Shown here: piece by piece, positions 15,001 through 64,000 of the stretch
Position numbering within the stretch: position 1 is the first letter of the stretch
How the letters are laid out: every line of letters begins with the position of its first letter
Origin: Orbicella franksi
Taxonomy: Eukaryota
Length of the DNA stretch: 64,000 bases
Reading direction: 5' to 3'
Assembly (NCBI GenBank): GCA_964199315.1
Contig: OZ116711.1
Location: 4,960,001 to 5,024,000 of the forward strand
The notes under the pieces: model-generated
The model's database searches: none
What the model saw: the letters and a program-made list of their open reading frames with translations, nothing else
What the model was told of the DNA's origin: nothing
Translations under genes and position numbers: made by a program

Positions 15001-18000
15001 GATTGGTAAAAGACGGTTCAAAAGTCTACCTGGTGGTTTGACGGGCGGTCTAATAGGAGGTCTGACGGGCGGTCTGATTGGTGGTCTGACAGGTGGTCTG
15101 ACACGCGGCGGTCTAACAGGTTTAACCGGTTTAACTCTCTCGGCTGTAACAGAGAAAAACAGAATACAAGTTAGCAAAAAGTTTACTGTCCCAAATAATG
15201 CGTATATGATGTCCAATTCCAAGGAAAAGAAGGTTTATAAGGAGGAAGGATTAACTGGGGAAGGGACTAAAGGGCAAGAGAAGAGGAAACAAAGAATTTT
15301 GAGAAGCAACTGACTGGCCACTCTCACCTCTTCTCTTTCCGTAGACCTCAAATCTCATGGAGATGTGTCTGAACCACGTGCGAGGTTTGATTTTCACGTA
15401 GCGTGCGTAGATATGCGGTGTCAGAACGTGTGCCACCACGCTGTTACGGTCATTGTTAGCCGGGAAGATCTGGAAAATAAAAAGAATCCATATTAAGTTT
15501 AACGTTCAAATCATGTGTCACATCCGTAATGATATTGTATCATAGTTAACCAAGCGAAACACTGTGCTGAGTATTTTTTTATGGAGTATCTTTCCTGCTC
15601 AAAAATAATACACTTTTCTCAGTAAAAAAAGGCGCAGTTTGAAACAAGTAGCTTAAATATATCAACTTCAATTCGTCTCAACATTAACCATCTTAGATGT
15701 TCCTCCTGACCTTTCATCCCGCCGGGGGGGAACTGCCATATAAAAAGGACGGGGGTACTCGTCGTTCCTTTTAATTGTTACAGAAGCGGTTTGGGTGCCT
15801 CAAAGAGTGTTCAGCATCAAAAGGTCCACAGCAGGAGCTTTTGCGGTACTTTTTGGGGCATTGAGGCGAAAAAAAATGACGGAAAATAATGTGTTGTTTT
15901 AGAATAGACCATTTTACAGTTGTCTGCTCAGTGACCTGGCCTTTGTATGGCAGCGAGGCTAGAGTTGACCTTGTTTTGATACAGACCTCACTGCTTTTGT
16001 TGTGTAAAACACGTTGTTCTGATGCTAACTAGGTGCATTTACATGACAAAAGCAGTGAGGTCTGTATCAAAACAAGGTCAACTCTAGCCTCGCTGCCATA
16101 CAAAGGCCAGGTCACTGAGCAGACAACTGTAAAATGGTCTATTGGTACCTCTTAGGGGTGAAAACAACTTCAAGCCACGTCCACAAAGTAGGATCTTGGC
16201 CGGTACCTCTTAGTTCTGACGAGCACCCTCGTCTTTTTTATGTGGGATTCCCCCGGGCCTTTCACTCTAGCTCACACCATTACATTAGAGGTTCTTCGAC
16301 ATCGATTGAAGATGAGTTTGTACAAAACCCAAAAACGTTAACTATCCCGACAAAACTCAGTCTTTCAGTTAGTCGTCTTTTCTGTTTGTGTACATTTTTT
16401 TTCTTTGTATATTTACTATCATTCTGTGCCTCCCTACCTTGACTTGTCCACGTTTCGTGTAAGGTCTGAAGGTGTTTCCGTTATTACTGTACTCCACTGA
16501 GTAACTTGTCACCCACTGGTTCATGTCCTGCCGTCCCTGAGTCAGTATGCGTTTGATAATAGTACGCCGTTTGAGATCCACCTGTAAGAAGAGATAAGAA
16601 AAAAACTCTCTTAGTTCATATAAATGCAACAGGGTATCAACTTAAACTCATAACACCAACTGGAATTTAGATGAGACTTTTCACGACTCATTAACTTGGT
16701 TAGGGTAATGAATTTATATCTGAACTCGTGTAAGGTTTATTAAGGTTTAACAGCAAAGCAAAAGGACGCTTCGTGTTTTCAGTCACCTAACAGGAAACTT
16801 TGTAAAAGTCTTTACGGCAGCAGTTTCATTAACGTTTTCAGCAGGGAGGAAACTGGTTTTCATAGGCCGGCGGCTGCTGTTTTGAACTGAAAAACGTTCG
16901 TCTAGATGGCCAAACCAGGCGGGCAAAATCGCCCTCACAGCTAGTCAATTTGCCCGGTACCCGGCCCCCAATGAAACCCCTACATTACGGACATTTAAAA
17001 AAAGCCTTGTTGTGTACCTCTGAAAAGAAATTTTTAGCTCAATTTATTTCGCCAATGACGCTTTCAGTGATTTCTTTGCCATGCCAGAAGCTCTTAACAT
17101 AGGATCAATGACATACTGCAGGTAAAACTAACCATAATATATTGCCGTCGGTTGTTCCTCTTTGCCGACCACGCTCCTCTGTTCCTACCACGTGCCACAG
17201 TGTTCAATCTTCCAAAGCGTGCCCCATGATATTTGTTCCACTCAGATGACGCAGTCAGATAGCGGTCTCGAATCTTACGATCCTCGATACCCAATGGTAG
17301 ATCCTTTCTTGCTGTAGAAACAAATCAAATTTGTATCATGAATGTGAAGCTAATACCGATAACTCGGGAACAAACGGAAAACGCCCGCACTCCAGGCTAG
17401 AAAAATACCACTTACATGCTCGACCTCCATAGAACTCCAGCCTCATTGAAATATGGTTCACCCATGTTCGTGCATACACACGAACAAACCTTGATCTGAA
17501 TGGAGGGTCAAAACTGTTTTCTTTGATGGAGTAGTGATCACGGTTTCCTCGGAACACCTTCAAGAAAATTAACGAAAATGATTCACACAGGCTCGTTTGT
17601 CTTTTTTAGTGCACTAATGTACGCGAGGCCCAGGTTCCTTCATACTTTAAGGAAGCTCAGTCACGTTATTTTAAGTTATTTTGGCCCCGACCAAAATGAC
17701 CTTTGAAGAAAACCTGAAAATAGTAGTTTACTATGATAGAAAAACACCGCTCAGGGATTACTTTGGGAACTGAAGGGGAACCTCCTCTATGTATTCCCTC
17801 GGTGGAGGTCTTGCTTGAGGAAAAAAAACGCTAAGTTTTGATTTTCTTGTTATATCTAATTGTCTATGGTTTCTAGCCTAGCCTTATAATATAACTTTCC
17901 GCTCGGGGATTACTTTGGGAACTGTAGGGGAACCTCCCTTATCTATTCTCCTAGTGAAGGGCCAGCTTGAGGTCTAATTCGTTCATTATTACCTTAAGTC

Positions 18001-21000
18001 TTGAGTTAACTTTAAAAGGTGTCCATCGATATCCGTCAGGACTGTAAGCCACAGCAAAGTTAGTGACATATTGTTTAGCGTCACTTCTGCCCTGACAAGC
18101 AACCTTAGAGATCCTAACAGGCTTCCTGAAGTCAAACTGGATCCATTGTTTACGGTTGTTCTTCTTGGCTGACCATCCTCCCTTGAATCGACCACTTGGT
18201 TTCTGGTTCAGCCTTGCAAGGTGTGCGGCATGGTAACGATCCCACTCACTCGATGCCTTGATGTATTGCTTCTTAACCAGTCCCTTGGAGACACCGAGGG
18301 CCTTCACAACAGGTCTTGGAACTACAAAACAAAGAGAATGATCAGCATCTTATTTTTTTTGTACAATATCCATACAATGTCATGCAGATGGGTACTGAGA
18401 ATATAAAAGATCATAGATCAACTTTTAGCTTAGAACGAAAGTGTCTACCGCGTCCAACGTCCTGTTTTGACTCCCAGAAAGGGTAAAAAACTTGATCAAT
18501 GACAACAAAACACGTACGTGCTGCGACACTACGCTTCAAATTCGTTCTGAACATACAAATACTCCTTATTTGTCTCAACACACTTCTTAAAGTCCTATTA
18601 GGAGAAATTTGTTTCTGGTCACTGTGATCTTGGGGGACCAATCTCCTATCTTGCAAAACTAAATATAGTGGGCTGCTTTCGGTTTTGTGCAAAAATGTTT
18701 ATTATAAATTGAACAAAGTGCATGAAGTAGGCGGTTTGCGTCAGTTTAAACTGAAACATTGGGCAAAGCGCATTTTATATTTCCCTCTCTACGTTCTCTA
18801 TGCCATAAAAATCAGCGTGTCGCAAGTAAATTATCTCATTTCAAAGCATCATCCACTAATTTAAGTCTCCTATAGTTTATTGGTAAAATTTATTGCTGAT
18901 CTTAGTGTTAATTCTATGTACGAAATCGAAATTAAACAAAGCATTCCTTACCAAGGCGACGCCCATAGACCTCGACCCTCATGGAGATGTGCCTATGCCA
19001 TGTGTATGGCACCACACGGAGGTAACGGGCTCGGAGACGACGTGCAAATCGGTGCCGCACTATGGTGTTCCTGTCGCGGTTACCAGTCAAGAGCTGTGAA
19101 AAAATTTGAAGTTTTAGAGTTACAGGAAACTATTGTAAACAAGTTCTCATCTCGCCAAGCAAGTAACAATCCAACAGTAGTATCCTAAACAACTCACCAA
19201 AGTTCTACGACGCACTTGGTACCACCTCCAGCGGACGCCATCAGAACTGTACATGACTTTGTATGTCTTCACCCACTGTCCTAGATCCTGTCTTCCTTGA
19301 GTGGCCATGCCGTACAAAAAGGCTTTGCTTCCGACATCAATCTGCAGCCACTGGGCACGGTTGTTAGCACGTGACGACCACGCCCCTCTGTGCCTGCCTC
19401 GTCTCTGAGCGTTCAGTCTGCAGCGGTGAGGTCCGTGGTACGCGTCCCACCGTGAGGAGGAACTCAGGGCACTGTCTGGGATGCGACGATCCTCTACTCC
19501 CAATGGTAGTCTCTTTGTAACTGAAATATTAGAAAACAGTTTCATTGTATATGGTAGTAAAGGTTAAGTCTGCATACGAGCCAAGTGGCCCATCAGGCCA
19601 GCGCTTATGCCGGTTTCTGTAGCATGAAGCAACTAGCAGTACTTCTACTCCTCCCTGGATGGGATGCTATTCCATCGCAGGTAAACTCCCAGCATTAAGT
19701 TCGCCAGTACCCATTTATACACCTGGGTGGAGAGAGGCGCTGTGAGAGTAAAGTCCTGCCTAAGAACACGACACAATGTTCCTGGTCAGGACTCGAACCA
19801 GGACGGCTCGATACGGAGACGAGCGCACTAACCATGAGGCCACCGGGCCTCTACATTGTACAAACTAGCAGAAGTAATCTCGGGCGGAACGCTAAAGTAC
19901 TGAACTAACAAAGGTCTACTAGATTTATACTTTTGTTTAGTAGTAAATTTGCAAGTGAACTAAACATTCATCGAGTGGCTTGGTTCCAAAGTGTTTTGAA
20001 CATCGTTCATACCTGCATTGCGACCATACAGCTCAATTCTCATAGAGATATGTCCCCGCCAGCTGACAGGCCTGACACGAATTGATGACGCTCGTATGGC
20101 GGGTTGTAGGTAATGACGAACAATTGAGTTTCTGTTAGTATTGGCACGGAATGTCTGCAAATATACAAAGAAAAATCTGTTATTTGATATACATTAATAA
20201 CGAGTTTAGGGTAAGTAAATTTATCACAGTCGTAAGAATAGACAGTGCTGCATGTTTCTAGTTGTCGGCGCTTGAAGGAGCTACAGTACGTCACGGTTTG
20301 CGCTTCTTGAAACGTTAAGCGTAAATTTTTCAAGCTCGTCGTTTGTAATCCGTGTTAATCTTCTCCATGCTTAACCATCCTTCTTCCTTTATGGTTTATT
20401 ATATCTCTATGGTGCTTTTTTATTTTAGTAAACTGTTATTTTCAGGTTTCCCTCAATATAAACGTAACTTTGTACTAGGCCAAAATAACTCAAAATATCG
20501 TGACTGAGCTCCTTTAACTCCAGATTTTGAGCATGAAGCGGCTAGGAGTATTTCTGCTCCCACCTGGAATGGGATACTTGTTCATCGCAGGGTCCCCTCC
20601 CCCCCTTTCAGCATTTTGCAAAAGCACTGTGTCTGAGAGCTCATTAAAGCCCAAAATCTTCGGAGGCGTTTAATGTCCGGCTCAATATGGATGTGCAATA
20701 GCGGAAGCATGTCTAACGTTAAACGTGTCTCGGATTTTTTGTGGGCAAACGCCGCTGGAAATCTCAACAAACCTTAGTGACTCCCAGCTGTTTGTAATAC
20801 ACATAGTGAGTCTTGTCCATGCTGAACGTAAGGCGGTATTTTGTCACCCACTGGTTCATGTCTTCTCTTCCTTGGGAGGCAATGGCCACAATTTTCTTGG
20901 GTCTCTTGAAACACACTTCTAACCATTGGAAGCGGTCGTTGATTCGTGACGACCACGCTCCTCTGTACCTGTTAGATAAAGATATGAAAGTTATTGTAAG

Positions 21001-24000
21001 GTAGAGGAAAATAACAGCGTTTGCTTTATTTTCAGGTTCAAGACTTTCTTTCGTAATTCATCTCAATCTTCCCCAATCTTCCCCCATCCTTGCTTCTTTT
21101 TGGTTTGTTTTTACCTCTTTGATATTTTTCAACCGTAGTAAATTATTAATTTGAACTTTTCTTCGATTGGAAAGAAATTTTGTCCCCACGTCACAAGAGA
21201 TAACTGAACACTTAATTGCGACATAACTTTTTGACTACCCATTAACAAAAGCTGCACCATTTTTACCACCTTAAGTTTTACCTTACGACTAAAGTGTCGT
21301 CAAGGGTATGTATAAAATAGTCATACTAGTAATCGCTTTGCTGATTTAAAAAAATAAATAAATAAATAAATAAAAAAGAATGATGTTTGTACCCGGCTTG
21401 TCGCTTGACGTTCAGCCTCGCCCGCCAAGCTGCGTGGTATTTGTCCCAAATAGACGAAGCTCTGACAGCATGGTTTCTTATACGACCGTTCTCCATTCCA
21501 AGAGCTCGGAGTCGAGGCTTAATGATTCCTTAGAAAGAGATTGCAAGGGCAACATCATAAGAAATGCCAAGAAAAACAAATTTTTGTCAGTAGTGTAAGT
21601 ATAAGCTGAGTATTGCAAGTGGCGTAAGTAGTCGTATTGTATTGTAAGTAGTGCAAGTAATGGTAAGTACTAGAAAAGAAATGCGAAGATATAGTTAAGA
21701 GAATTAACTGAATTGTGGGGAAACTGCGATAACTCCGAAATGCCTTGAACAGACTACGCTAATCAAAAAGAATTAGAAACCAGGAATAACAACAAAAAAG
21801 AAACTTACATTTGCCTCCAATTTTAACGCGGAGCCTTTCAAGGATGTGCAACGAAAGCTCAAAATTGCTCACATACAGTTTGCATCACAAAGATATTGTG
21901 GTAACATATCCAATCCCAAAATTAACTTGACAATATACTACCATGAAAATCACTTGACCAATTCAAATGCGCACTCAGTTACAACAATCGGTGAAGGATT
22001 GTGAAGTGTAATTTTGACATCAAATTTAACCCCATAAACCCAGACAATATAGCTCTCAGCAAAACACTAATGACGTACCTGGTCGGCGTCCATAGAATCC
22101 AACTCTCATAGAGATATGTCCGTACCATGACACCACAACGATTCTGATGTACCTGGCGCGGATGGGAGGACGCAGTGGATTCGTGACGATACTGTTCCTA
22201 TCACTGTTTCCACGGAATATCTGACAAAAAGAGAACGTTTATCAACTTCGACTGGATGTGCCACAACAAAAAAATCTCAGTGACATGACAAGCAAGGCGT
22301 TTGCTGTGAGTTACAAAATAAATGCTATGCATAAACAAGAACCTTGACCAATATTCACGGAGTCATGAAAATCAAAATTTAAAGTTGTAAAACACTCCAA
22401 AATGGGTCAGATATGTTTGCTAGTGAAAAAAACCTCAACAGTATTTTGATGCAAATATTCGAGCTTCCCATTTAGATTGTAGTGAGTCAGTGAACGTTCT
22501 CGTTCGAAGGAATCATCGTTTTAACACCTTATTCCATAAAAACAGTGAATAAGAAAAGACAAAACTGTTTACAGAAAGATAAGGAACCGTAACGTTAGAT
22601 AATGTTGTTACAATCTTCCGAAAGGCTGCTGCTTTTTCAGTCTCATTTTACTGCTAATAACGGCGCCCTCTGTACAGTGAATCGAACAGGATTTTCCTCG
22701 CGTCGGTTCGCCGATCTTTACGCTTTATTCCTAACGAAAACTTACTAAAACCTCCAGACCACGCCCCAGGGTGAACGCTGTATAAGTTTCCACTGTGTCT
22801 GCAGACTCACCTTAACTCGCCCGCCTTTCTTATAAGGTATAAACCGAACTCCGTCATTTCCAAACAACAGCTTATAACTGGTGACCCACTGGTTTGCATC
22901 CTGTCGTCCCTGTGTTCTTATCGCTGTTATCAGAGTCGGGCTTCCGAAGTTGAACTGTAAGAACTGACGCCTGTCATTCTTCTTTGCTGACCAGGCTCCC
23001 TTATTTCGGCCTCGGGCTTGGTTATTCAGTCGTCCGAGCCAGGGGGCATGGTAACGATTGTATGTAGAGGAGGCAGTGACGTAACTGTTTGGAATCTTGC
23101 CGTCTTCGACTCCGATTGGCACAGAATTACGAGCTGATAAAAAAAGTTGGAAAAGAATTTTAAGACTCTCTTGGTTCACTGTTTTAGAATTGAAACAACT
23201 TGGGCAACTCACTCAAGTTACTGAAATTACCTTTATCTGTAAGTAAAGTTCTTATCAAGATTGTTTTATCAAATTAATTCCTAAATTTTGTCATGTTGGG
23301 TGTCTAACAGAGATGTCTGCTAGCAGGTACTTACAGATTTTCCTGACGTAGAACTCAGCTCTCATAGATATGTGTCCAACCCATGTCCACGGGTGAATAC
23401 GTACATATCGGGCCCGGAATGGAGGGATAAATAAGTTCTCCTTCAGTGTGTTCCGGTCTTTGTTTCCAGGGAAAATCTGAAACAAGGCAAAAACACGAAC
23501 AAAATTGTTACTATGGGTAGATACTACACTGCAAGACATTATTCAGTTACTGAATGAAGTGGTGTGTCATAGCTGGAGCTATTAAGAGCTAAGTTCGCAT
23601 TCACAATCCTAAAAGAGGGAATTAAGCACACAACTAAATGGCCTATTGATCTCGCGCACGATTGTCGTATACTAAAACAGAAGTAATCAAACCATGCCAT
23701 TGGCAAAAGAAACGCATTAATAAGCAAAAACACACCACACCAAGTTTATAAGGAAAAAAATACAAACGGAGCACAATCCTTTTAATCCCTTACCTTGACT
23801 CTTCCGTATTTCTTGTACCGTATCCACCGATATTTATCCTGACTGTACGAAATAATAAAGCTTGTGACCCACTGTTTGGCATCATATCTTCCCTGTGTAA
23901 CCACTTTAACAACCTTTCTAGGCTTTTTAAGATCAAACTGGAGATACTGGCGGCGATTGTTCTTCCTCGCTGACCAGCCTCCACGGTATCGTCCTGTGAC

Positions 24001-39797: not shown

Positions 39798-39834
<37 letters not shown>

Positions 39835-41441: not shown

Positions 41442-41481
<40 letters not shown>

Positions 41482-53400: not shown

Positions 53401-54727
53401 AATCAAGATAGTGTTTGACCACATTTCGAAACACCTCGAAGTTTGTCAAAAAATACTCCGTTACGCGTCCTATTTTCAACTCTCTTCTCGGTGCTTGGAA
53501 ATGTGGCCAAACACGGTTTTTCGTGTTTGATATTACATATAAAAGGTACAGACCGATGATACATCCAAAGAATTCAACCCTCATAGACATCCATCCACGA
53601 TACGCTCTGGGGTGAACACGAACATATCGAGCAACAAATGGTTTGTTAAGGGTGTGTGTTACCACGATGTAACGGTCGTAGTTGCCACGGAATAGCTGCA
53701 ATAAAAATGAAATCGTACAAAATTAGTTGAGTCGATAGATCTGTAGAAAAGCCGAGGGGGCAGAAACTTCACTAGAATCCTAAACGTATCGGTAAATAAC
53801 TGAAAATGATTAGCACGTCCCAAGTAATATAGTCGGAAGAAAAACAAACGTTTCTCGGCAAATTTTCGCACAGTTTTGTACTCTTACTATTAAAACATTG
53901 TGACCACTCGTGAGCATTCGGAACATTAACACGTCAGTAGTGCACAATGAGGTTAAGGCATTGTTATTTAGCAACATGTCGTAACGTACGTAGGTGATGA
54001 AAACTGCAGACTTGATACAAATTTCTTCCTCAAAGCTGACCTTAACTGGTGCTTGTTCAATGGAGTGAACATGTCTCCGAGACATTACTAAAAACAGTGT
54101 TTCATCAAGATTTCAGTCTTGGACGATCCCAAATATAGATATGTGTCAGGTGTTACTAGAAATACATGCTAGTCAATGAAATTACAGCAAAGGTCCGAAA
54201 CAGATCACGCTAGCGGCCAAACTGGTAACAGTATTATTTGGTTAAAAGCTTCTTAGGGTATCGCCTGAGGACACATTTTACCTTGATTACTTTTCGTTCG
54301 GCGTAATATTTATAAGTAGATCCATCACGGCTGTAAGTTATTCTGTAAGTCCTGACCCACTGTTCTGCGTCATGTCGGCCCTGAGTGGCGATGCCTGTTA
54401 CACGAGTCAGTGCTTCAAAATCAATCTGCAAGGAAATCGTATGTGAGATAAAAGCTAACAGTTTGTGAAACTAATACGCACATTTGTTCACTCAAAGACA
54501 TCTTGTACAGTTGTACAGTGGTACCGTTGGACACCACTAATTCAAACTCGGTTATTTCGAATTCCTCGTTATTTGAAACTCAAACCCATTTCCTTTGGAT
54601 TTGCCCTTCACTCATTTACTATCGGCTTTTTCGAAATCCCGATATTTCGAACTATTTTTCGTTTCCCCAGAGAGTTCGACTGTCTATAACGTAGGAAGCC
54701 TATTCTGCAAATAGTGCGTATTTAAAG

Positions 54728-54786
<59 letters not shown>

Positions 54787-57700
54787 ATTGATATCTTCTT
54801 TTTGGTTTCGAGGCCCTAGAAAACCCATAGAGAAAAATTAAACATTTTTATTTTTCATCGAGTATATACGCTTAGTACCCATTTGAACTATTCACTGTAC
54901 CTGCAAATACTGTTTGAGATCATTTCTACGCGCGCACCATGATCCACCCAATCTTCCCACTCTCCTCTGATGCAGGCGAGCATTCCATGGTCCACAATAG
55001 AAACTGTGGTACGATGAAGCTGTGATTAACGGATTGGCAATACGCCGGTCCGCCATGCCTAGAGGCATGTTACACTTGTCTAGAAAAAAAAAAAAAGAGA
55101 AAAGGCATGTATTGTTAGGCTGTTATTTCACTGCTGATTTACTTGTACAACGCAGTTCAACTTCAGATCTCAAATATCTTAGGCGCACATGAGCCAACTG
55201 AAAAACAAAACGTAAAACTTGAGTTCAACAGGCTCACCGTACGACCCTGAAAAGTTTGTGAACAGTTGATTTGATATAAGTTGGGCATGTTTATGGTGCA
55301 ATTAGAACTTAGATCAATACACAGGGATAGTTACAGTGTATCATTAAGGGTTTCTTAGGGTTCACAATCTAACTGTTTGATTTTCTCCCGCGACACAACA
55401 ACAGACTTCAGAAAATTCTCCTTTTCCTTTCATTCTGGTATGCTAGGTGTGAGGTTTATGTAGCCAGTTGGCGAGTTTTTGACGACAAATAACGTCATTA
55501 AAACAATCCAAAAACCTATTCACTTACGCTCTGGGCACCCATAAAGTTCCAGTCTCATAGCTATGTAACTGTGCCAGCCCTTGGGTACGACACGGAAATA
55601 CACAGCTTTGATTGGCGGAGAGAACGCTTGGGTCTTCACAGAGTGACGATCATTGTTGCCTGGGAAATACTGCAAAAGAGGAAAAGATATTTTTGCGTAA
55701 TGTTAGTAGGATTCAAATATATTTGTCGATTTAAACCTGAATGCTTTCGATTCGGTTCCTCCCGTTATGTTCCTATTCTTTTTATGATAGCTCCAGTTTA
55801 CTTACAAGAACTTGTTGGTATATCAAAACAACGGCTCTTATTTTATAGTTTTCGTATTTATTCCAACATTTACCTGCTTTGCCAAGCGCGGCAGAGTCCA
55901 AACAAAATTATACATTGTTGAAGTTATTGCTAAGGCTAACAGGCATAAAGTCTGAGAGAAAAAAATATTTTGTTGAACAGTTTCCCCTTCATTGCTATCC
56001 CTAACAAGACAGGTGTATGACTGAAATTCAGACAAAAAATTCCTTACTGATTTTATGCTTTGATCTGAGACATGCGAGGTAACAATAGGCTTGAGAAGAA
56101 AAACTGCTCTTTTCAGTGGCTCTCAACAGTTAGCAGATACTTGCTCCTGTTTTTTTCCACATAAGAATCCCACAACTTAGCTGCATACCTTAAAATTCCC
56201 GTACTCCATGTAGTACTCAAAGTGCATGTTATCCTGGCTGAAAGCCACCAAATAACGCGTTACCCACTGATTAGCGTCATGCCTTCCCTGTGTCGCAATT
56301 CCTGTGATTTTCATTGGTCGACCCAGAGCGATCTGTAGATATTGATTGGCATTTCGTATACGTGCTACCCAGGCTCCCATATAGCGGCCAGTACGTGAGC
56401 GGTGGAGTCGAGCGAGGTATGGACCGTGGAACACATTATAGGATGAGGACGCAGTCATAGCAGTGTTCTTGATTCGGCCGCTCTGTATGCCAACTGGAGC
56501 GGCACACGGTCGAACTGGAAATTGAGATTTTGGAGTTAATTACTGAACATGCATACGTGTAGACCAAATTGCACTTTTAGGATGATAATAGTTGTGAACA
56601 AATCTGGCACACAACACCAGACAGCAAATGCTTGTAGAATTTATACTCATGTCCCACTTCCATTTCGACATACCACTAAAAACGAAACCTGCTTAAAAAA
56701 TGTTAATCACAAGTTTGCTATTATACACATGTGACAACTACCATATTGCTTGAGGTACTGTACATACCAGCCAGACAGCCATAGAATTCAACCCTCATCG
56801 AGATGTGGCTGCGCCAAGATTTGGGATGGATTCGTACAAACTGTGCTTTAAAAGGCGGGACAAATCTGTAGGCTACCACTGTATGGCGATCAAAATTACC
56901 ACGGAATACCTACAAGAAATACGCACATTGTCACTGTTAGTAACAATATTGCTATATAACACTCACCTACCGTCATTTTATGTATGGTCAAATTATTGTT
57001 AAGCCAAAGCACATATCATTTTGTGAGCTTTAAAGTTCAACTCAGGGCATATTAAAAGTGATACTTTTACGTCTCATTTACAAAGTAGAAAATCAAACGA
57101 ATTTTCAGCTGATGATATAGGAAAAAAAATGCAAGCTAAATGTGAAGTAAGTCAAGACAAGAGAAGTATTTCAGGACTAAAATTGTACGTATCCTCGTTT
57201 GTCACGATGTGCCAAGTCACCCTTACGGTAAATTAAGACCGCCTTTGAAACTAAATTTTTCTTCTTTGATTAAGATGCCATATGAAGCAATTCTTGAATA
57301 TACTTTGAACATTAACTTCATTTTTTTCTAGCTCTGGGGAAAATAATCTAGAAAAATGGCTTTTACACAGTAGCACATCGTGCGAAGTATACTACTGAAA
57401 GTTGGAGATTCCCATGTGAGTGAGCAGTACCAGTTCACATGCATCCCATGTTTATGTAGACAAATCAACGCACCCTTGTTCGTCCGTACTGCTTGTAAGA
57501 GAAGAATGTTCTTCCATTTCTGCTGTATGACACAATATATGACGTCACCCACTGGTGAGCATCTTGCCTTCCTTGAGTAGCCACGCCCTCTAGGCGACCC
57601 AAGACACCAAAGTCAACCTAATTACAGGTAAATTAATATTATTAACCAAATCAATGAAAGAGTACCAAAACGAACTATTGTGACAATGAAAATTGTTCAG

Positions 57701-60700
57701 TTATGTCAAGAAAAAATTGAATCCCTCATTACTACCCAACCAGTTAGCTTAAGAGTCTTTGGCTTAGAGTACACGCAACCTAATTACTTTCTAATTTGAC
57801 TTAAGAAACCGGTTAAGCCTAGATTCAGAATTTATGTATCTCCTGTCCTTATTTATCACTGACTGAGAAAGTTACTTCATTGTGATCGGCTGAAATAAGC
57901 AAAAATATAGTTAATTTTTCATTTGCACTACAGCGCAAATTATACAGGCGCATTCGTAATTTTCATAGTCATAAAATAAATGAGTAATCGTATGAAAGAT
58001 CGAACAATCAAGGATTTACATTACTCATGATATATGAAAATTATTTTAAATTGCGCTCGCCTTATGGTTCCTGCAATTTTGAGAGAATTTTCAAATAAAG
58101 CCTTCACTGCACTCGCATTCATACAATTATTTTGACTACACTTGTAAAAGTTGTACCAGAGTTAACCAATGTATACTTACCTGCAGCCATTGTCCAGCGT
58201 TATTTCTCTGGGCACACCAGGCACCAGTCCTACCACGACCAGCAACCATATTGAGCCGCCCGCGATCTGGGCCATGTCTAGAGTTGTGACTTGAAGAGGC
58301 AGACAGTGCACCGCTTGGGATGCGGCGATCTTCTATACCAATAGGAACCTTACATCGTCCTTGAAAGTACATAAGAGAACACATAATTTCAAGTTCAAGT
58401 TGCATGAAGAAAAATCTTCAAAATACTGTTCAATACAATGACAAAACGACACACCGAAACCTCCGAATCTTTGCTGACTTCCAAATTGCTAGAAAACAAC
58501 TTTCCACAACAACAGAATTTATTTACCCCATTTAATAGCTTATATGTACAATCATTTCAAATGATCTTTTGAAAAATTGAAAGGTTACCAGCTCCCTGAA
58601 ATAACTAAAAAGCTAAAGATGCCAGGGAGCTGGTTTATTTTCACTGACTATAATTCGATTGATCAAATTTACACTAAAAATGTGCTGCTTTACTTTCTTT
58701 AACGGGAAAACATTGTTCATTGATCATTATAAAATGGTCATCACCAACACAACTTAAAACCAAAACCAGAAGAAACAAAACTCTAACTCTGACTTTGAAT
58801 TTTCTTGCTAGGATCAACAAATATTAAACGCTAGCACTTGTTTGGCCATTGGAAAAAAAAATTCCCGAAATCATTTTTTTAGGGCCTACGGAAACCATAA
58901 CAATATTTCAAGCTGATATCAGAAGAATAAAGTAAAATGAAAATAAGTCACTGCACTAGAAGAAACAGTTAACCTTACCGATTGTACAGCCATAGAGCTC
59001 AACTCTGATTGAGATGTGTCGGTACCAGGACCTGATGTGAAGTCGCACAAAACGGCCTCGGATTGGTGGAACAAGGGCATGGGAAACAACTGTGTTCCTA
59101 TCGCGGTTGGCTTGGAAAATCTGATGAACGAAGATCAAGTAAAGTACCTCAGGTTAAGGAATGAAATACAATTTTCACTGACCGTACATGTGATATGACG
59201 GATCGAACAAAAAGTAGCCCAATTACGCTTTTAATTTGCTGTTATTTCGTTGGCAGTAAGTATCTAGCATTGGCCGTACAATGCCGGCCCCTTATCAAAA
59301 CATGCAGCGACCTTAAAATAAAACGTCTTGACTTTACACTGACTTTGACAAAAATGTTAAGCATTTTCAGTTCCCGAGTATTAGCCGATCGCGAAATAAG
59401 TTTCTTATTTCCCGACTTATTTCCCCGTCCACTAGCAGCCACGATATTTTAGCTGTACAAGAATATTTCGAAATGAAACCCACCTTCCTCGTATTGCGTT
59501 CAAAATAAAAAGCAAAGTAAACTCCATCCTGACTGTACAGTAGATAATATGATGTGACCCATTGGTTAACGGTGGGTCTACCTTGAGTCGATATACGGAC
59601 GATTTTAGTGGGTCTCCCCAAGTCAATTTGTAACCACTGGAAGGCGTTATTCGCTCCTGCAGACCAGCCGCCCATGTACCTCCCCCTGCGTTGGTTTTGT
59701 AGCCGAGCTAAATAAGGAGCATGATGATTATCCCAGCGAGATGATGACGTAATGGCGACATTTCTGATGCGGCGATTCTGCATTCCCAACGGACGATTAC
59801 ACAGTTTACCTGTGAAGGCAACATCACATACATTTTTACAGAGACGTTCCTGGTTTTCGAGAAGACTTTGGTATGAAAATGTTTCTTCTCGTAAGAACTT
59901 CAATTGTACAAGACCATTCATGGCCATATAGCCAGACAAAAAATTTAATAAGGCAATGTCCATGAAAAAAGTATGACTGAAGCAATGTCCATGAAAAAAA
60001 TGACTGAAGCAAACTCCATGAAAAAATTATGAGTGAGACAATGTTTATGGTTAAATTCTCTTCTTAGTTATTTAGGGTGTTTATGATGACTGTAAACAAC
60101 AAAAACAAAAAGGCAAGTGTCTCGGTTGGCCTCTTACTAGTTACGGCCCAAGCAATTTATAAATTCGCTGGGAAGAAATCATGCAGTTTGTTATAAGTTG
60201 GAATTTGTTACATCAAAGTCTTTTCATACTCTACTGTATATCACAAAGTTCCGTAACTGTTGTTGGAAATTTCGCGTCACCCACAAGGTTACTGCTACTT
60301 TTTAGATTACTCCCTTTTTTGTTTGTTTTATAAGGTGTTTGTGGCCTCAAGATTACTTGCATCAGAATTATTTAGCTTCAGCTGGCCTCACCTAATCTGC
60401 AGCCATAGAGTTCCACTCTCATGGAGATGTGACTGCGCCATGTTCGGGGGTGAATACGAACATACCGTGCTTTGAAAGGGCGCAGGAAGCGATGGGTTAC
60501 GACGAAGTTCCTCTCGAAGTTCCCTTTGAAAACCTGTGTAAAACAAATGAAACAAGAGAACACGTCAGAAAGTTATTTCACATGCAAACTTCACAGAAGG
60601 CTACTTAAATTAATGACATTGACAAAGAAAATTACTTCACCTTAATCCTTCTTCCTTCCCTATATGGGATGGATCTGACATTGTTCATACTGTAGGACAC

Positions 60701-60956
60701 TGCATAACTCGTGACCCACTGGTCAGCGTCATATCTACCCTGGGTAGCGATTCGCTTGAGTCGAGAGACTGTGCCCAGGTCTATATTCAAGTACTGCCTG
60801 GCATTGTTGTACCTGGCGGTAGATAAGTAAGACATAACAGCATAGATAAGTTCAAGTGCCAGTTTCTCTGGCAAAGTAAGTTTCTTTTCTATCATACATG
60901 ATACTGAAGGGAAACTGGCCAAAGAAAAATAGGCCATTTTCTACAAATAGGGCATT

Positions 60957-60993
<37 letters not shown>

Positions 60994-63900
60994 CTGAGGC
61001 TGATGAGTCATTTCAAATGCAAATGATGGTAATCTGTTTTTATTGATAGTCCTCCGCATGAGCTCCATTGTCAGCTAGTTTCAGCCCTATATCGAGAACA
61101 CGAATATGGCCTGTTGGGAACACCAAAACCTTACTTACTTACAACAATATAAAAAGTTAATATGATAAAGAGGTATTTTGCCGAAACACTGAACGAAACC
61201 ACAAAATTAAGTCTGAGCGTGTCCAAATGTAATCGTACAGTACTCACTTTGCGATCCAACCTCCTCGAACATAGCCGTGATTCCTGGACTGAAGTCTGGC
61301 ATTCCACGGTCCGTAGTAATAGTTGTACATGGACGATGCCGTAACAGCTTGTTTGGTAACGCGACCGTCCTCCATTCCCAAGGGAACATCACAAGGATCT
61401 TATATGAACCAAGGAAGAGATTAGCCAAAAGGAATGCATAAGTAACAACTGAATGAGTAATAAAGTACATGTAACTCGGCTGAATGAGTAATTTATAACG
61501 TGCAACTGAACTAAATTTCTACGAGTTTTGATAACAAGAACAAAGTGAAATTATTCTTCATGAAATGGGTACCGTTATTCTTATATTCCCGGGAGCCGTG
61601 GGTAAGGGTGGGTTGAGTCGCCAAAAGGCCTCTGAATTCTTTTTATTATTATTATTATTATTATTATTTTGTCTCAACGTATAGCATCCTCAAGGACTAA
61701 GGGGGAGAGTCGGGTCAAAATTTTTGGGTCAGAAAGAAGGCAACCGGGACTATTTACCCCTGGGTCTCCGAGGATGCACCTATAGTTGTGTGTTATATGA
61801 AAACAACAACAACATACAACGTTTTTTTCTCAAGGTCGGTTGATGAGACAGGGGTGAAGTGCCCCAAACTCAAAATTGGAGCAAACGACAGTCAGCTCTC
61901 TGGCCAGAACAGGAAAACAGTAGAAAATAACTGTCCATAAGATTTTGAATTAATAACTGCAATATCATGCAAGCAAGTCACATTTCTACTAAAGACCTTC
62001 TTTCTGTCTATTAAATACTGTGTATCACTTAAGACCTTTACCTGCTCTGCAGCCATAAAACTCGGCTCTCATGGAGATGTAGCCATGCCATCCCCACGGG
62101 TGCAGACGAAGATAGCGAGTTTGTATTGGTGGAGACAGGACGTTATCCACAACGCTGATACGGTCACGATTGGCAGTGAAGTACTACAAAGAGTAAACAA
62201 AACATTGTTCATCTAAATGAGCTGAAAACACTTCACTATCACTATAAGGAACTGAGGTAATACACACGTTGCCAAAAACGTCCGTTGCTAAGTTAACATG
62301 TGCACGATTTGTTTTTCTGCAAAACCACAATGAGGCAGTGTTGCAAGATAGGTTGCACCCAATAACAGACGGTTAAACGTCAAACTGCTATACTTACAGG
62401 GACTTTAATAACTGTTCTGCTTCGAGCTGATAACTGGTCATTTAGACACATGCCCAGTTGTATAAGCTTCAACTCGAATCTTAGGAAGACCATAGTGTAA
62501 ATATGATACGATTTCGTGTTTAAATAAAGATTGAATTGTCTTGACTTATACCATCTGTAAGCATCAAAAGGAAACAAATCTGACCTTATCCTGACTTCTC
62601 TGTCTGTAGGTTGCCCAGTGCAGCGTGTCCAAGCTGTATGTCAGCTTGTATCTTGTCACCCACTGGTTGGCATCTCGTCTTCCCTGTGTAACAATCTTTC
62701 GCACAGTTGTAGTTCTTAAAAAGTCGACCTTAAACCACTGGTTACGATTGTTATGTCTGGCAATCCAGCAGAAAGGCTTGTGAAGTCGTCCATTTGGTGC
62801 TGTGTAGCGTCCATTGTAAGCCGATGAGGAGGTGATTCGTGCATTGGGGATTCTTCCAGATTCTAGGCCCAGTGGACGGTTGCAAAGTGGGGCTAAATGG
62901 CAACAAAACAGCAACTAAGAAGAAGGTCCACCACACCTTGTACTTGTTTTTGACATTTTGTGGCTTACAGTTGTTTTAGTTGGAAAATTTTATAACCAGT
63001 TTGATTCTCATTTTCTTTTGTTTCAGATACTGATACGAAATTTTAAGCAAAGTTAAATAAAACGAAACTTTGAAAAAAGGCAAATTAAATGGAAAATTAA
63101 AGGTAAATTGAAGGTAAATGAATGTAAAAACGTCGCGTTTAAAAAGGATTCAAATCAACTTTTTTGATCTTTGATTCTCTTTGGTTTATTGACTCTTTCT
63201 TATGCAAGTAAATATATGAAGCATACCTCAACTGCGGAATTAAGATTTAAAGATATGAGGGATAATCGAAGACTTGAAACCTAAGCAGTAAGTTCAACTA
63301 TTTAAGGTTTCCTTCAATGTGAATGTGCGTAATTTAGTACATCTCAAAATATGACTTATTAGCACATAATAACATGACCAATAAGTTCATGTAACGACTT
63401 ACCAATAGGGCATCCTATGAATTCCACTCTCATGGACATCCAGCCATACCAGGTCAGCGGATAAACACGGATGTATGAAGCGGCTATGGATCTGGGGAAA
63501 GTGTTGGTGACTATTGTGTGACGGTCACTGTTGGCTGTGAAAACCTGTCAAACAGGAATGCATAGAGCAGCAGGTATTAATTGTAAATGCGACCGAATTA
63601 CCCACCGTGTTTTAACATTCATATAAGACCAAAGCGTTTTGGAACGAAGCTAAGTTAAGTGTTAGAACTGATATTTTGAAGCGGTTGTTAAAGGATGAGT
63701 GGTGAAGAGACAGAACAAAAGATGTTGACAAAGTTTTTGTTCGTTAGGAGAGTAGAGAAACTTTACGAATGGCCAATTCGCTCTGTGAAACGTGTCTGCA
63801 GGGCCGGGAATCATGGTAGTTGTATTCATCAGAAAAAATATCCTGTCTAAGATGATGAATATAACTACCATAATTCCTTGCAAGCCCATCTCATAGAGGA

Positions 63901-64000
63901 TGGAGGAACCCCTTGTACTGCTTCTATTATTACCCTTAATCACTGGAGAACACTTTACCTTTGGATACTTTACAAATTTAAATCCATCTCTACTAAACGT
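11999..64000 (-). CDS. Giant secreted-type multidomain protein, 5'-partial: 26 F5/8 type C (discoidin) domains in two arrays flanking a VWDE-like VWD/EGF core, with a C-terminal VWA domain; 75 exons and 4,968 aa within the window
   Basis: Exons in transcript order: 64000-63959, 63544-63403, 62892-62585, 62183-62042, 61398-61248, 60812-60641, 60533-60392, 59809-59484, 59120-58979, 58359-58181, 57617-57474, 56909-56768, 56514-56189, 55669-55528, 55079-54901, 54425-54282, 53695-53554, 53277-52952, 52685-52544, 51659-51358, 50939-50798, 50133-49802, 49603-49462, 49022-48700, 48009-47868, 46977-46824, 46317-46146, 45937-45796, 45399-45080, 44531-44390, 43779-43656, 42936-42729, 41945-41804, 41432-41206, 40837-40751, 40332-40015, 39273-39200, 38683-38617, 38307-38104, 37553-37375, 36828-36405, 35979-35611, 34825-34580, 34236-34128, 33523-33207, 32744-32603, 32218-32040, 31393-31253, 30902-30761, 30472-30144, 29468-29327, 29070-28748, 28138-27997, 27529-27198, 26845-26704, 25498-25176, 24738-24597, 24122-23794, 23476-23335, 23133-22811, 22220-22079, 21528-21393, 20968-20773, 20154-20013, 19520-19198, 19093-18952, 18321-17993, 17557-17416, 17311-17133, 16581-16438, 15469-15328, 15143-15030, 13815-13600, 13289-12934, 12088-11999. 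All internal junctions are GT-AG with compatible phases and no in-frame stop; the total of 14,907 nt is divisible by 3. Confidence 0.9.
12166..12462. mobile_element. MITE of the same cccggggg/ctcccatatgaaaagg family
   Basis: tcccatatgaaaaggtc and gaccttttcatatggga inverted termini. Confidence 0.75.
12934..13815 (-). CDS. von Willebrand factor type A (VWA) domain (2 exons), MIDAS-degenerate
   Basis: Exon 13815-13600 (CPVTLDLAFVMDASNHV...HIGLITYA) and exon 13289-12934 (LDLAL...RVLVVMTGG...GVQVYAMGVG...ELRSIA...IC). Confidence 0.92.
15030..15143 (-). CDS. Proline-rich linker exon (RPP[VI] repeats)
   Basis: AERVKPVKPVRPPRVRPPVRPPIRPPVRPPIRPPVKPP; phase 1 at both ends, AG/GT boundaries. Confidence 0.85.
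15328..17311 (-). CDS. Discoidin domain D26 (type B, no Cys pair, 3 exons)
   Basis: RKDLPLGIEDRKI...YIM|VDL...TQGR; EVYGKRR. Confidence 0.92.
15718..16257. mobile_element. cccggggg...atatgaaaagg TIR family non-autonomous element (host of the palindromic MITE)
   Basis: Inverted termini; related copies at 12166-12462, 45444-45744 and about 2950-3110. Confidence 0.65.
15906..16140. mobile_element. Young palindromic MITE with 95-bp perfect TIRs and an AT target duplication, nested in an older repeat
   Basis: 15903-16000 is the exact reverse complement of 16046-16143; the host repeat target agaATtggtacc is split as agaAT-[element]-ATtggtacc. Confidence 0.85.
17416..18321 (-). CDS. Discoidin domain D25 (type A, no Cys pair)
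   Basis: PRPVVKALGVSKGLV...CQGR; EFYGGRA. Confidence 0.92.
18952..19520 (-). CDS. Discoidin domain D24 (type B, no Cys pair)
   Basis: TKRLPLGVEDRRI...TQGR; EVYGRRL. Confidence 0.92.
19556..19851 (-). mobile_element. Near full-length tRNA-derived SINE (cnidarian type)
   Basis: The minus strand begins with a tRNA-like head (GGTGGCCTCATGGTTAGTGCG A box; GGTTCGAGTCC B box), has the ccaggtgtataaatgggta core and a (TTTACC)-like tail. Partial copies lie at 20531-20604, 31421-31820 and 38760-38920. Confidence 0.85.
20013..21528 (-). CDS. Discoidin domain D23 (type A, no Cys pair, 3 exons)
   Basis: PRLRALGMENGRI...RQAG|YRGAW...SQGR; ELYGRNA. Confidence 0.92.
20276..20513. mobile_element. Reverse-oriented copy of the TTAA-flanked Kolobok-like MITE family
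   Basis: ggccaaaataactcaaaatatcgtgactgagctcct|ttaa. Confidence 0.7.
22079..23133 (-). CDS. Discoidin domain D22 (type B, no Cys pair)
   Basis: RNSVPIGVEDGKI...TQGR; VGFYGRRP. Confidence 0.92.
23335..24122 (-). CDS. Discoidin domain D21 (type A, no Cys pair, divergent N-terminus)
   Basis: EAPVRPSGIPTGRRGARYITASS...TQGR; EFYVRKI. Confidence 0.9.
24597..25498 (-). CDS. Discoidin domain D20 (type B, no Cys pair)
   Basis: PSRLALGVEDRRI...VQGR; ELYGYLL. Confidence 0.92.
25772..26525. mobile_element. 754-bp non-autonomous DNA transposon with 19-bp TIRs and TTAA duplication (Kolobok-like)
   Basis: ttaa|ggtggccgaacacagtttt ... aaaactgtgttcagccacc|ttaa, one TIR mismatch. Confidence 0.8.
26704..27529 (-). 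CDS. Discoidin domain D19 (type A, no Cys pair)
   Basis: RRAAPKPLGLQNGRI...TQGR; EFYGRAT. Confidence 0.92.
27997..29070 (-). CDS. Discoidin domain D18 (type B, no Cys pair)
   Basis: KYSVEVGLEDGKI...TQGR; IGLYGQRA. Confidence 0.92.
29327..30472 (-). CDS. Discoidin domain D17 (type A, no Cys pair)
   Basis: PRPVAKPLGLSNNRL...TQGR; EFYGNTL. Confidence 0.92.
30761..32218 (-). CDS. Discoidin domain D16 (type B, no Cys pair, 3 exons)
   Basis: SRLPLGVSDKRI...WLQ|VDL...IQGR; ELYGKYL. Confidence 0.92.
31421..31820 (-). mobile_element. Truncated copy of the same SINE, interrupted by a MITE (31602-31797)
   Basis: The SINE B-box motif ccagggctcgaacccgg is split by an element with gggcccgtttctcgaa / tagaaactggtcc termini. 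Confidence 0.7.
32603..33523 (-). CDS. Discoidin domain D15 (type A, no Cys pair)
   Basis: SQQYKPLGMKNGRI...TQGR; EFYGHRT. Confidence 0.92.
34128..36828 (-). CDS. Post-VWD Cys-rich region, EGF-like domain and Cys-rich tail of the VWDE-like core (4 exons)
   Basis: Exon 36828-36405 (WPTPTGIT...HC...C...CVTDIK); exon 35979-35611 with the EGF-like CPDNCNKRGRCVNGKCRCYRGYGSSDC; exon 34825-34580 (VAISNNG...IYDSACHRC); exon 34236-34128 (NNCIIKGLCY...KCIP...W). Confidence 0.88.
37375..39273 (-). CDS. von Willebrand factor type D (VWD) domain (4 exons)
   Basis: CQGTGDPHYRTFDNK|YYD...; VQARIWPCWRVVCNCGVAIRENNDVVTIDMC; GLCGNNNGNPRDD. GDPH...TFD and GLCGN.N are the hallmark VWD motifs. Confidence 0.92.
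38760..38920 (-). mobile_element. Partial copy of the same tRNA-derived SINE
   Basis: Contains ggtacccattcatacacctgggtg and ggactcgaacccggacc, shared with 19556-19851. Confidence 0.75.
40015..41432 (-). CDS. Pro/Val/Arg linker and beta-rich pre-VWD region of the VWDE-like core (3 exons)
   Basis: Exons 41432-41206 (DYPVISRPVVRPVIKPGRGCSKVALRCYF...), 40837-40751 (VACKVRARY...) and 40332-40015 (VHPKAFSMTD...YRLPPIK); phases fit. Confidence 0.8.
41442..41526. repeat. Compound microsatellite (ATCA)n(GATC)n(CAGT)n
   Basis: Direct reading. Confidence 0.95.
41804..43779 (-). CDS. Discoidin domain D14 (type A, Cys pair, 3 exons)
   Basis: MCFQPLGMQNGRI...LNQR|RVHRLVGAW...TQGR; EVYGC. Confidence 0.9.
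41987..42148. repeat. ~27-bp C-rich minisatellite, about 6 copies
   Basis: Unit approximately cccctcctccaccctcccgaaaataac. Confidence 0.9.
42431..42688 (-). mobile_element. Second tRNA-derived SINE family
   Basis: B-box-like ggttcgattccgacccgg on the minus strand, ggagaacccggagaaaaaccc core and AT-rich tail. Confidence 0.65.
43859..44097. mobile_element. MITE with CAG target duplication (PIF/Harbinger-like)
   Basis: cag|ggccgggttgttcaaagcc ... ggctttcgaacaaccgggcc|cag. Confidence 0.75.
44390..45399 (-). CDS. Discoidin domain D13 (type B, Cys pair)
   Basis: ACGAPLGLEDGRI...TQGR; ELYGC. Confidence 0.92.
44561..44958. repeat. ~400-bp compound microsatellite (AATG)n/(AATC)n/(CAGT,CTGT)n
   Basis: Direct reading. 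Confidence 0.95.
45796..46977 (-). CDS. Discoidin domain D12 (type A, Cys pair, 3 exons)
   Basis: MCNRPLGMMTGGI...WSAR|YNN...TQGR; EVFGC. Confidence 0.92.
47088..47522. mobile_element. Decayed DNA transposon with many subterminal tccgaaa / tttcgga repeats
   Basis: Inverted clusters of (g)tccgaaa at both ends; tacctgc...gcaagta termini. Confidence 0.55.
47868..49022 (-). CDS. Discoidin domain D11 (type B, Cys pair)
   Basis: RCDIPLGSEDGRL...IQGR; ELYGC. Confidence 0.92.
48454..48680. mobile_element. TTAA-flanked ~230-bp non-autonomous element (Kolobok-like), multicopy
   Basis: TTAA on both sides; TIRs aggagttcagtcacgg / catgactgagctcct; homologous copies at 6111-6353, 20276-20513 (reverse), 46536-46731 and 17650-17749 (partial). 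Confidence 0.75.
49462..50133 (-). CDS. Discoidin domain D10 (type A, Cys pair)
   Basis: VCSYPLGVQSGRI...TQGR; ELHGC. Confidence 0.92.
50221..50547. mobile_element. MITE with ggcgcttaccattta inverted termini
   Basis: Perfect 15-bp inverted match between 50223-50237 and 50444-50458; a second degenerate end lies near 50530-50547. Confidence 0.6.
50798..51659 (-). CDS. Discoidin domain D9 (type B, Cys pair, loop deletion)
   Basis: RCALPLGLEDKRI...GRINSIRSWSAR...TQGR; ELYGC. Confidence 0.92.
51724..52400. repeat. Diverged intronic tandem duplication with a ~350-bp period
   Basis: ggaaaa..gtgtaaggtaaat...gtttcaaaataaaaa.gtagaacattagttcaa...cacttctaagta occurs near 51724 and again near 52074. 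Confidence 0.85.
52544..53277 (-). CDS. Discoidin domain D8 (type A, Cys pair)
   Basis: QCNRPMGMENRRI...TQGR; ELNGC. Confidence 0.92.
52761..52936. mobile_element. MITE family with aatag/ctatt-type termini; second copy at 60946-61115
   Basis: Shared core gtattggac.ggaactagcttgcaactgaggct and inverted ends. Confidence 0.7.
53554..55079 (-). CDS. Discoidin domain D7 (type B, Cys pair, 3 exons)
   Basis: KCNMPLGMADRRI...YLQ|IDFE...TQGR; EFFGC. Confidence 0.92.
54728..54792. repeat. (TTGA)n microsatellite
   Basis: Direct reading. Confidence 0.95.
55528..56514 (-). CDS. Discoidin domain D6 (type A, Cys pair)
   Basis: PCAAPVGIQSGRI...TQGR; ELYGC. Confidence 0.92.
56768..58359 (-). CDS. Discoidin domain D5 (type B, Cys pair, 3 exons)
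   Basis: RCKVPIGIEDRRI...WLQ|VDFG...TQGR; EFYGC. Confidence 0.92.
58979..59809 (-). CDS. Discoidin domain D4 (type A, Cys pair)
   Basis: LCNRPLGMQNRRI...TQGR; ELYGC. Confidence 0.92.
60392..61398 (-). CDS. Discoidin domain D3 (type B, Cys pair, 3 exons)
   Basis: PCDVPLGMEDGRV...WIAK|YNN...TQGR; ELYGC. Confidence 0.92.
60946..61115. mobile_element. Second copy of the 52761-52936 MITE family
   Basis: aatagggcattttcgtattctc ... gagaacacgaatatggcctgtt. Confidence 0.7.
62042..62892 (-). CDS. Discoidin domain D2 (type A, Cys pair)
   Basis: LCNRPLGLESGRI...TQGRRDANQWV; 142-nt exon ending EFYGC. Confidence 0.92.
63403..64000 (-). CDS. Discoidin domain D1 (partial; runs off the window)
   Basis: Exons 64000-63959 (TFSRDGFKFVKYPK) and 63544-63403 (VFTANSDRH...WMSMRVEFIGC). 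Confidence 0.85.

Follow-up and report, generated by a model that had tools for sequence, protein, structure and literature searches.

How does a whole block of homologous domains within one protein come to lack a disulfide that its neighbouring block possesses, and what may this mean for the protein? The question is raised by a 64,000-nucleotide stretch of DNA from the coral Orbicella franksi (assembly GCA_964199315.1, contig OZ116711.1, positions 4,960,001 to 5,024,000 of the forward strand), which we call the window in the following. Its minus strand encodes discoidin (F5/8 type C) domains in two arrays, here referred to as the N-array and the C-array, with a VWD-EGF core between them. In factor V/VIII-type domains a pair of cysteines forms the disulfide joining the domain termini, as seen in solved structures. 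Within the window this pair is present throughout the N-array and absent throughout the C-array. We assign a probability of roughly 70% to the reading that the locus represents a single coral gene of the secreted type and of very large size, whose arrays were built from domain dyads, and in which a dyad without the cysteines was amplified into the twelve domains of the C-array.

Two discoidin arrays that differ in their terminal cysteines

The domains were characterized with a hidden Markov model (HMM) of 150 positions trained on 13 clean discoidin domains of the window. To join the exon pieces in a splice-aware manner, GT-AG sites were picked for continuity of both the reading frame and the HMM. 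Domains are numbered D1 to D26 within the window and X01 to X51 over the whole gene, such that D1-D14 correspond to X26-X39 and D15-D26 to X40-X51. All discoidin-coding exons of the window lie on the minus strand. Each domain is split into an A part, which spans HMM positions 1-106 and takes up one exon or two, and a B exon for positions 107-150. The module borders are in phase 1. The HMM map contains 14 B exons with the ending ..G-C between 63547 and 41751 and 12 B exons ending without Cys between 32744 and 15254, the same domain count as in a preliminary description of this DNA. After splice joining both arrays read open without a stop, and no runs of N were met in the window. The complete chain starts with about 39 discoidin domains, followed by the VWD-EGF core, the second array of 12 discoidin domains, a linker rich in proline and finally a VWA domain. 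All of its 51 discoidin domains score between 155 and 232 bits with the window-derived HMM. With the Pfam model PF00754 (F5_F8_type_C) nine A exons of the C-array and one of the N-array reach 51-78 bits, the gathering cut-off being 28.2.

The part of the N-array inside the window covers 41811..64000 according to HMM matches and the spliced model. It comprises D1 with its C-terminal half (63410-64000, truncated where the window stops) followed by D2 (62049-62884), D3 (60399-61393), D4 (58986-59801), D5 (56775-58354), D6 (55535-56506), D7 (53561-55074), D8 (52551-53269), D9 (50805-51654), D10 (49469-50119), D11 (47875-49017), D12 (45803-46969), D13 (44397-45394) and D14 (41811-43765). A Cys stands in column 1 of the HMM in D2-D14 (13/13) and in column 150 in D1-D14 (14/14).

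In the C-array none of the 24 corresponding positions is Cys (0/12 at column 1 and 0/12 at column 150). In the following we give for each domain the residue found in place of Cys1 and then the domain end, the last letter of which stands in place of Cys150. For the first cassette these are D15 (32610..33523; Q, YGH; RNA junctions, Pfam 61.8 bits), D16 (30768..32213; S, YGK; spliced model, RNA junctions), D17 (29334..30461; V, YGN) and D18 (28004..29065; Y, YGQ), the latter two located by the spliced model, Pfam and RNA, with two junctions for D17 and one for D18. The spliced model together with Pfam places D19 (26711..27515; A, YGR), D20 (24604..25493; S, YGY), D21 (23342..24111; P, ..FYVR), D22 (22086..23128; N, YGR), D24 (18959..19515; K, YGR) and D25 (17423..18310; V, YGG), while D23 (20020..21514; R, YGR) and D26 (15335..17306 with the exon end at 15328; K, YGK) come from the spliced model.

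The dichotomy is correct and far beyond chance (Fisher p = 1.9e-7 for column 1 and 1.0e-7 for column 150). According to the preliminary description, the domains ahead of the core all carry their cysteines, including the C-terminal end of D1, and the twelve domains behind it all lack both. Inside the window both statements hold; for the whole gene the first one has to be relaxed, since one domain further upstream (X07, see below) lacks the pair. We looked for alternative Cys-bearing exons of D15-D26, which the description had named as a possible refutation, and the HMM scan of the region between 15 and 34 kb yielded no extra discoidin exon on either strand. The demonstrated structural consequence is that the twelve C-terminal domains have no covalent staple between their N- and C-termini. 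For the N-array domains we infer the Cys1-Cys150 disulfide from the solved homologues.

The remaining cysteines are scattered and do not match the dichotomy. Shifted cysteines in the frames of D21 (..ICK) and D25 (..ACK) were considered and rejected: their codons lie beyond the best donors, GTAAGT sites at 23334 (D21) and 17415 (D25), and are spliced out. A lone Cys of D15 (33213-33215, minus strand; P-Y-L-C-R-K, HMM column 101) is kept in every orthologous fragment or contig seen. This conserved unpaired residue suggests an intermolecular bond, by analogy with the one proposed for Cys605 of sea-urchin nectin.

Transcription of the Cys-free array

Part of the region 28001-34000 is contained in 14 runs labelled as RNA, four of which we compared with this 6-kb stretch. 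All eight predicted junctions of D15-D18 were used by spliced contigs in three runs. They are 33207/32744 and 32603/32218 for D15; 32037/31390, 31251/30900 and 30760/30471 for D16; 30142/29466 and 29327/29070 for D17; and 28746/28136 for D18. A contig of 6004 nt from one run (X4) enters the core with the 1596 nt that lie upstream of 33525, and it continues for about 2.5 kb on the downstream side. Since it spans both, core and Cys-free array share one transcript.

The same run contained a joint at 28045/29024 with a side of only 21 nt and no GT-AG, which we attribute to misassembly between repeat units. Several intronic stretches (29600-30000, 30800-31200, 31400-31800, 33000-33200 and 33600-33800) showed a summed RNA contig depth of hundreds to thousands with many loose ends, compared to about 10-100 for the exons. 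They probably represent repeats or transposable elements that are transcribed.

Conservation and predicted fold

Contigs from other corals allowed us to follow the two arrays across species. The first of them (L015) matches D13-D21 position by position at 58-67% identity, with two Cys-bearing domains (D13'-D14'), the VWD-EGF core and seven Cys-free domains (D15'-D21') in this order. The boundary between the arrays is therefore common to both corals in the only contig that reaches D13-D14. The counterparts of D15 and D16 even have the same H and K in place of Cys150. Two more contigs (L014 and L016) at 73-84% identity carry Cys-free D15-D18 and D15-D17, respectively, such that the Cys-free array is seen in three contigs. 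D15 orthologues start with QQ[YF][KR]PLG and end with ..YGH. Outside the corals, a partial protein of the sea anemone Nematostella (P0179) contains a Cys-free domain with 64% identity to D19, and the domain preceding it ends with ..Y-G-R. A search with this protein returned no spliced coral fragments. An exhaustive representative search with the A exon of D15 found single-exon fragments of the gene (82-96% identity) together with paralogous or foreign arrays only, and no annotated full-length orthologue model. Three short contigs (L011-L013) and a gap-filled Nematostella scaffold (L017) added little.

Over D15-D18 the ratio of nonsynonymous to synonymous substitutions (dN/dS) was 0.10 against L014 and 0.096 against L016, and the Cys-free domains were as similar to L015 as D13-D14. 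Judged from these comparisons, the Cys-free array is old, constrained and under strong purifying selection. We also considered a decaying pseudo-array and rejected it on account of the intact frames, HMM scores at the level of the N-array, a dN/dS of about 0.1 and spliced RNA.

For the fold we used the Nematostella domain as a proxy for the domains of the window (P0179:45-193, with an alignment of 47 rows). The model had a predicted local distance difference test score (pLDDT) of 93.6, and its best structural matches were FVIII C2, lactadherin C2, FV C2 and neuropilin b1. It superimposed on FVIII C2 (4ki5_M, 1d7p) over the full length including both termini, with a template modelling (TM) score of up to 0.90 and a root-mean-square deviation of 1.7 Å. 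For this proxy, the Cys-free homologue of the sea anemone, the prediction is thus a retained fold of the factor VIII C2 type.

Extension of the N-array beyond the window

Scanning 70 kb upstream of the window, i.e. past base 64000, revealed 25 more B exons on the same strand that reach 42.3 kb past this base. The corresponding 25 domains continue the Cys-bearing array on the minus strand of contig positions 5024001-5066320 (loci L004-L008). The N-array has thus 39 domains, X01-X39, rather than the 14 seen in the window, and in it an eight-domain cassette recurs about five times, once every 12-15 kb. X01 is present as a C-terminal half-exon only. Both cysteines were found in 37 of the 38 complete domains.

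The exception is X07 (L007:1138-2285, minus strand, 31-32 kb past the window end; HMM). It starts with F-Y-D..G, where Cys is replaced by Tyr, and ends with ..F-G-G, where Cys is replaced by Gly. Its cassette paralogues X15, X23 and X31 possess both cysteines, and fragments from other corals that are 64-92% identical to X07 have kept the Cys-less start E-R-F-[YF]-D. For these two reasons X07 is, on the sequence comparison, an old and independent paired loss. It brings the number of unstapled domains in the chain to 13.

Just upstream of the array lie two intronless frames of rhodopsin-like G-protein-coupled receptors (327 and 353 amino acids; L008:5589-6569 and L008:8859-9917, minus strand) that are paralogous to each other.

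Ancestry of the Cys-free block

The preliminary description had proposed that the C-array descends from one Cys-free founder. A maximum-likelihood (ML) tree of the 50 complete domains of the gene bears on this directly. In the C-array it contains clades with a period of four, namely D16/D20/D24 (support 99/96) and D17/D21/D25 (100/99), and in the N-array clades with a period of eight. According to the tree, D15-D26 is a four-domain cassette repeated three times, with D15 to D18 at its positions 1 to 4.

A deeper split of the tree (91/98) separates two domain types, which alternate strictly along the N-array. Leave-one-out profile typing assigned 38 of the 38 N-array domains correctly. When applied to the C-array it classified the odd positions (D15, D17, ..., D25) as type II by -22 to -37 bits, with the even positions, among them D16 and D18, type I-like. 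In the ML trees the Cys-free domains were likewise divided six to six between both types. Independent evidence comes from the linkers. The one from a type II to a type I domain has four residues in all 25 dyads (19/19 in the N-array and 6/6 in the C-array), while linkers from type I to type II vary between 4 and 7 residues. The ED versus QN motifs are also common to the Cys-free and the Cys-bearing array. Because of the typing scores, the even division in the trees and the fixed linker, the founder should have been at least a dyad with two lost pairs. Most likely the C-array started from a II-I dyad that was already without both cysteine pairs, which would amount to at least two paired losses in addition to that of X07.

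A further tree included nectin, other echinoderm proteins, two Cys-bearing arrays of corals and protist arrays as outgroups. All 50 domains of the gene formed one clade (86). Its nearest outgroup was a Cys-free, nectin-like clade of echinoderms (84 and 95 in the Shimodaira-Hasegawa-like approximate likelihood-ratio test, SH-aLRT), with the Cys-bearing coral arrays lying outside. This position, and the fact that nectin domains are among the best matches of D15, would agree with a C-array acquired by fusion with a nectin-like discoidin gene that had been Cys-free since ancient times. We nonetheless regard such a fusion as highly improbable. It conflicts with the single clade of all 50 domains that leaves nectin outside, with the N-array domains being the nearest neighbours of C-array domains after their own cassette copies, and with dyad types and linker lengths that are common to both arrays. 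The direction of the change is less directly given by this tree, on which loss and gain take similar numbers of steps. Loss of the pairs is the inferred direction, because regaining a matched pair at the canonical positions two to three times would be far less likely.

The dyad founder has to be weighed against a simpler history, in which the cysteine pair disappeared in one event from one discoidin domain, the common ancestor of all twelve domains of the C-array. Here several observations count against our reading. The even positions of the C-array lean towards type I but are ambiguous (-3 to +11 bits). Approximately unbiased (AU) tests on the alignment including the Cys columns, on the alignment lacking them, and on a set enlarged by 15 orthologous domains did not reject a single origin of the twelve (or, with orthologues, 25) Cys-free domains as one clan (p = 0.123, 0.151 and 0.131). 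When orthologues were included and the Cys columns left out, the tree recovered the type split exactly, but with a support of only 75/37. The starred branches taken alone require just one change. The polarity of the loss is argued on plausibility, because the nearest outgroup is itself Cys-free. With respect to the gene model, the link of the N-array to the core is based on frame compatibility and on the adjacency in L015 rather than on RNA, and the sequence as far as the neighbouring genes yielded neither an N-terminal half-exon of X01 nor a clear exon for a signal peptide.

On the other side, a single clan of Cys-free domains occurred in 0-3% of the bootstrap trees and cost 12-19 log-likelihood (lnL) units. 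The odd positions are clearly type II, and both the 4-residue linker and the ED/QN motifs would need convergence if all twelve domains came from one. A single founder domain is therefore disfavoured by the comparison, and we consider it unlikely. Of the original proposal the block ancestry stands, being borne out by the period-4 clades and by the orthologues, while the founder was probably not a single domain and the tree points to at least two paired losses and the separate one of X07.

Taken together, the dyad reading proposes the following history. The ancestral unit of both arrays would have been a type II domain followed by a type I domain with a fixed linker of four residues. In the lineage of the C-array both domains of a dyad would have lost the cysteine pair stapling their termini. 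The Cys-less dyad would then have grown into a four-domain cassette, which was triplicated into D15-D26. These steps would have preceded the divergence of the sampled corals and probably the split between corals and sea anemones, with the N-array retaining its staple apart from X07.

The VWD-EGF core and flanking features

The core between the arrays (34126..41432, minus strand) encodes about 810 amino acids in 11 exons, which are conserved with the three other coral contigs. It contains a weak Ig_VWDE-like exon, a VWD domain, an unnamed Cys-containing exon and a teneurin/tenascin-type EGF part. The first VWD exon (39199..39273, minus strand) carries the motif C-Q-G-T-G-D-P-H-Y, of which GDPH is kept in L014, L015 and L016. 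Pfam matched VWD at 37374-37625 with 27.5 bits (cut-off 22.9) and EGF_TEN/EGF_Teneurin at 35551-35979 with scores under their own cut-offs. The Ig_VWDE match at 41203-41430 was weak (E = 0.043), and PF26129 (Vwde) was recorded only for the product of the L015 orthologue. A Pfam search of six core exons gave nothing above threshold other than VWD and EGF. In some mucins and in FCGBP the GDPH motif is a site of acid-triggered autocatalytic cleavage. If this cleavage were used here, the protein would be cut between its two arms.

The core is joined in frame to the N-array by the phase 1 donor of D14 at 41803 and the core acceptor at 41432. At the other end of the C-array, the phase 1 donor of D26 at 15327 and the acceptor at 15143 form an in-frame junction with an open proline-rich linker exon (14944..15143, minus strand; V-R-P-P-type repeats). 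Behind it, two exons encode a VWA domain (12847..13831, minus strand; Pfam VWA, E = 1.4e-10 and 5.5e-14), which lies C-terminal to both arrays. Downstream of the giant gene there is a histone H2B-like open reading frame (4502-4837, minus strand). An intronic element of about 130 bp at 63768-63900 has at least 40 copies with 80-88% identity on many chromosomes of the genome.

Comparison with known systems and possible mechanical roles

Among known proteins, nectin of the sea urchin Paracentrotus lividus (Q70JA0; P0003) is an adhesive/cohesive protein that resembles the C-array in being secreted and in having tandem FA58C domains, all six of which lack the terminal Cys pair according to our HMM. 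It contains 1.1% Cys; the disulfides predicted for it do not include one between the termini, and dimerisation has been proposed to involve one Cys at the surface (PMC10057474). In contrast to the coral gene, nectin has six domains only and neither a Cys-bearing array nor VWD, EGF or VWA domains. Its domains are 35-45% identical to those of the coral gene, and it is not an orthologue. The C-array does not share its descent with nectin on our trees, since it groups with the Cys-bearing domains of its own gene and the nectin clade stays outside, with a moderate support of 86. Cys-free arrays were also found by HMM in other echinoderm, amphioxus and protist proteins.

The C domains of FV and FVIII, lactadherin C2 and neuropilin b1 have the fold that is predicted for the Cys-free sea-anemone homologue, and D1-D14 keep Cys at the positions that join their termini. 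These proteins have one or two domains, all of them stapled, whereas the coral chain has 51. The temporary adhesives that echinoderms, flatworms, limpets and cnidarians produce have been reported to combine FA58C, VWD and EGF repeatedly (PMC10057474). The core is also reminiscent of VWDE (von Willebrand factor D and EGF domain-containing protein) in its VWD and teneurin-type EGF parts and its weak Ig_VWDE and Vwde matches. Neither these marine adhesives nor VWDE include a described member with two discoidin arrays of opposite Cys status, and an adhesive role of the coral protein would be a guess from its domain content. No paper on the coral protein, or on a split into stapled and unstapled domains inside a discoidin array, was found in the literature searched, which is no proof of absence.

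Other cnidarian arrays look different. A Nematostella vectensis protein (P0018, LOC5504709; 2144 amino acids) has 14 discoidin domains in which Cys-bearing and Cys-free ones are interleaved and not in blocks. Proteins of Acropora millepora (P0002, LOC114977630) and Pocillopora verrucosa (P0001) contain tandem discoidin domains that are nearly or fully identical (6 of 8 identical in P0002). By their identity, the latter arrays are very recent amplifications, unlike the old and diverged cassettes of the window gene.

What the missing staple does for the protein may be considered in the light of von Willebrand factor (VWF), where homologous domains in one chain also differ in an N-C disulfide. 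In VWF this bond is present in A1 and A3 but missing from A2, which fits the unfolding of A2 under force (PMC3144584), and in A1 a long-range disulfide protects against force (bioRxiv 10.1101/2022.01.13.476208). The likeness is mechanical only: the fold is VWA rather than discoidin, and in VWF just one domain is unstapled, for which a protease site is known. Under tension, the load on the N-arm would be borne by the staple, and on the C-arm by the beta-sandwich itself, such that the C-arm could extend. By this analogy two mechanically different arms, as the preliminary description had envisaged, are a plausible hypothesis. A more specific proposal would be a two-arm device older than the split between corals and sea anemones. 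In it, a 39-domain N-arm, each domain being short-circuited by an N-C disulfide, would form an inextensible tether and the 12-domain C-arm would unfold one domain after another by up to about 650 nm, acting as a shock absorber or force sensor beside the cross-linking VWD and VWA modules and thus as a discoidin version of the VWF A2 principle. This proposal appears doubtful.

An alternative without any mechanical function is a neutral founder effect, to which we give slightly less than an even chance. Here the staple would be dispensable for the fold, and its absence would have been fixed by chance, spread by amplification and been hard to reverse, given that two residues have to return together. 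Sea-urchin nectin works with six Cys-free domains, and the Cys-free arrays of echinoderms, amphioxus and protists point in the same direction. The replacement residues vary within cassette positions and thus give no sign of specific compensation. In addition, X07 represents a lone loss that was tolerated and conserved, and a Cys-free homologue is confidently predicted to fold. Against neutrality stands that 37 of the 38 N-array domains kept both cysteines over the same time, which argues for selection on the staple where it is present, and that the sharp spatial division marked by the core has been conserved. The neutral effect is a matter of function alone and leaves room for the favoured descent from a Cys-less dyad; for now it accounts for the data equally well as the mechanical idea.

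The coral gene offers a natural matched pair for asking whether the disulfide joining the termini of discoidin domains serves stability, folding or mechanical shielding. At the same time the gene provides a clear worked example of how the amplification of exon cassettes (dyad, four-domain and eight-domain units with phase 1 borders) spreads a structural change. If the two arms do differ mechanically, the principle of VWF A2 would be extended to an invertebrate matrix protein.

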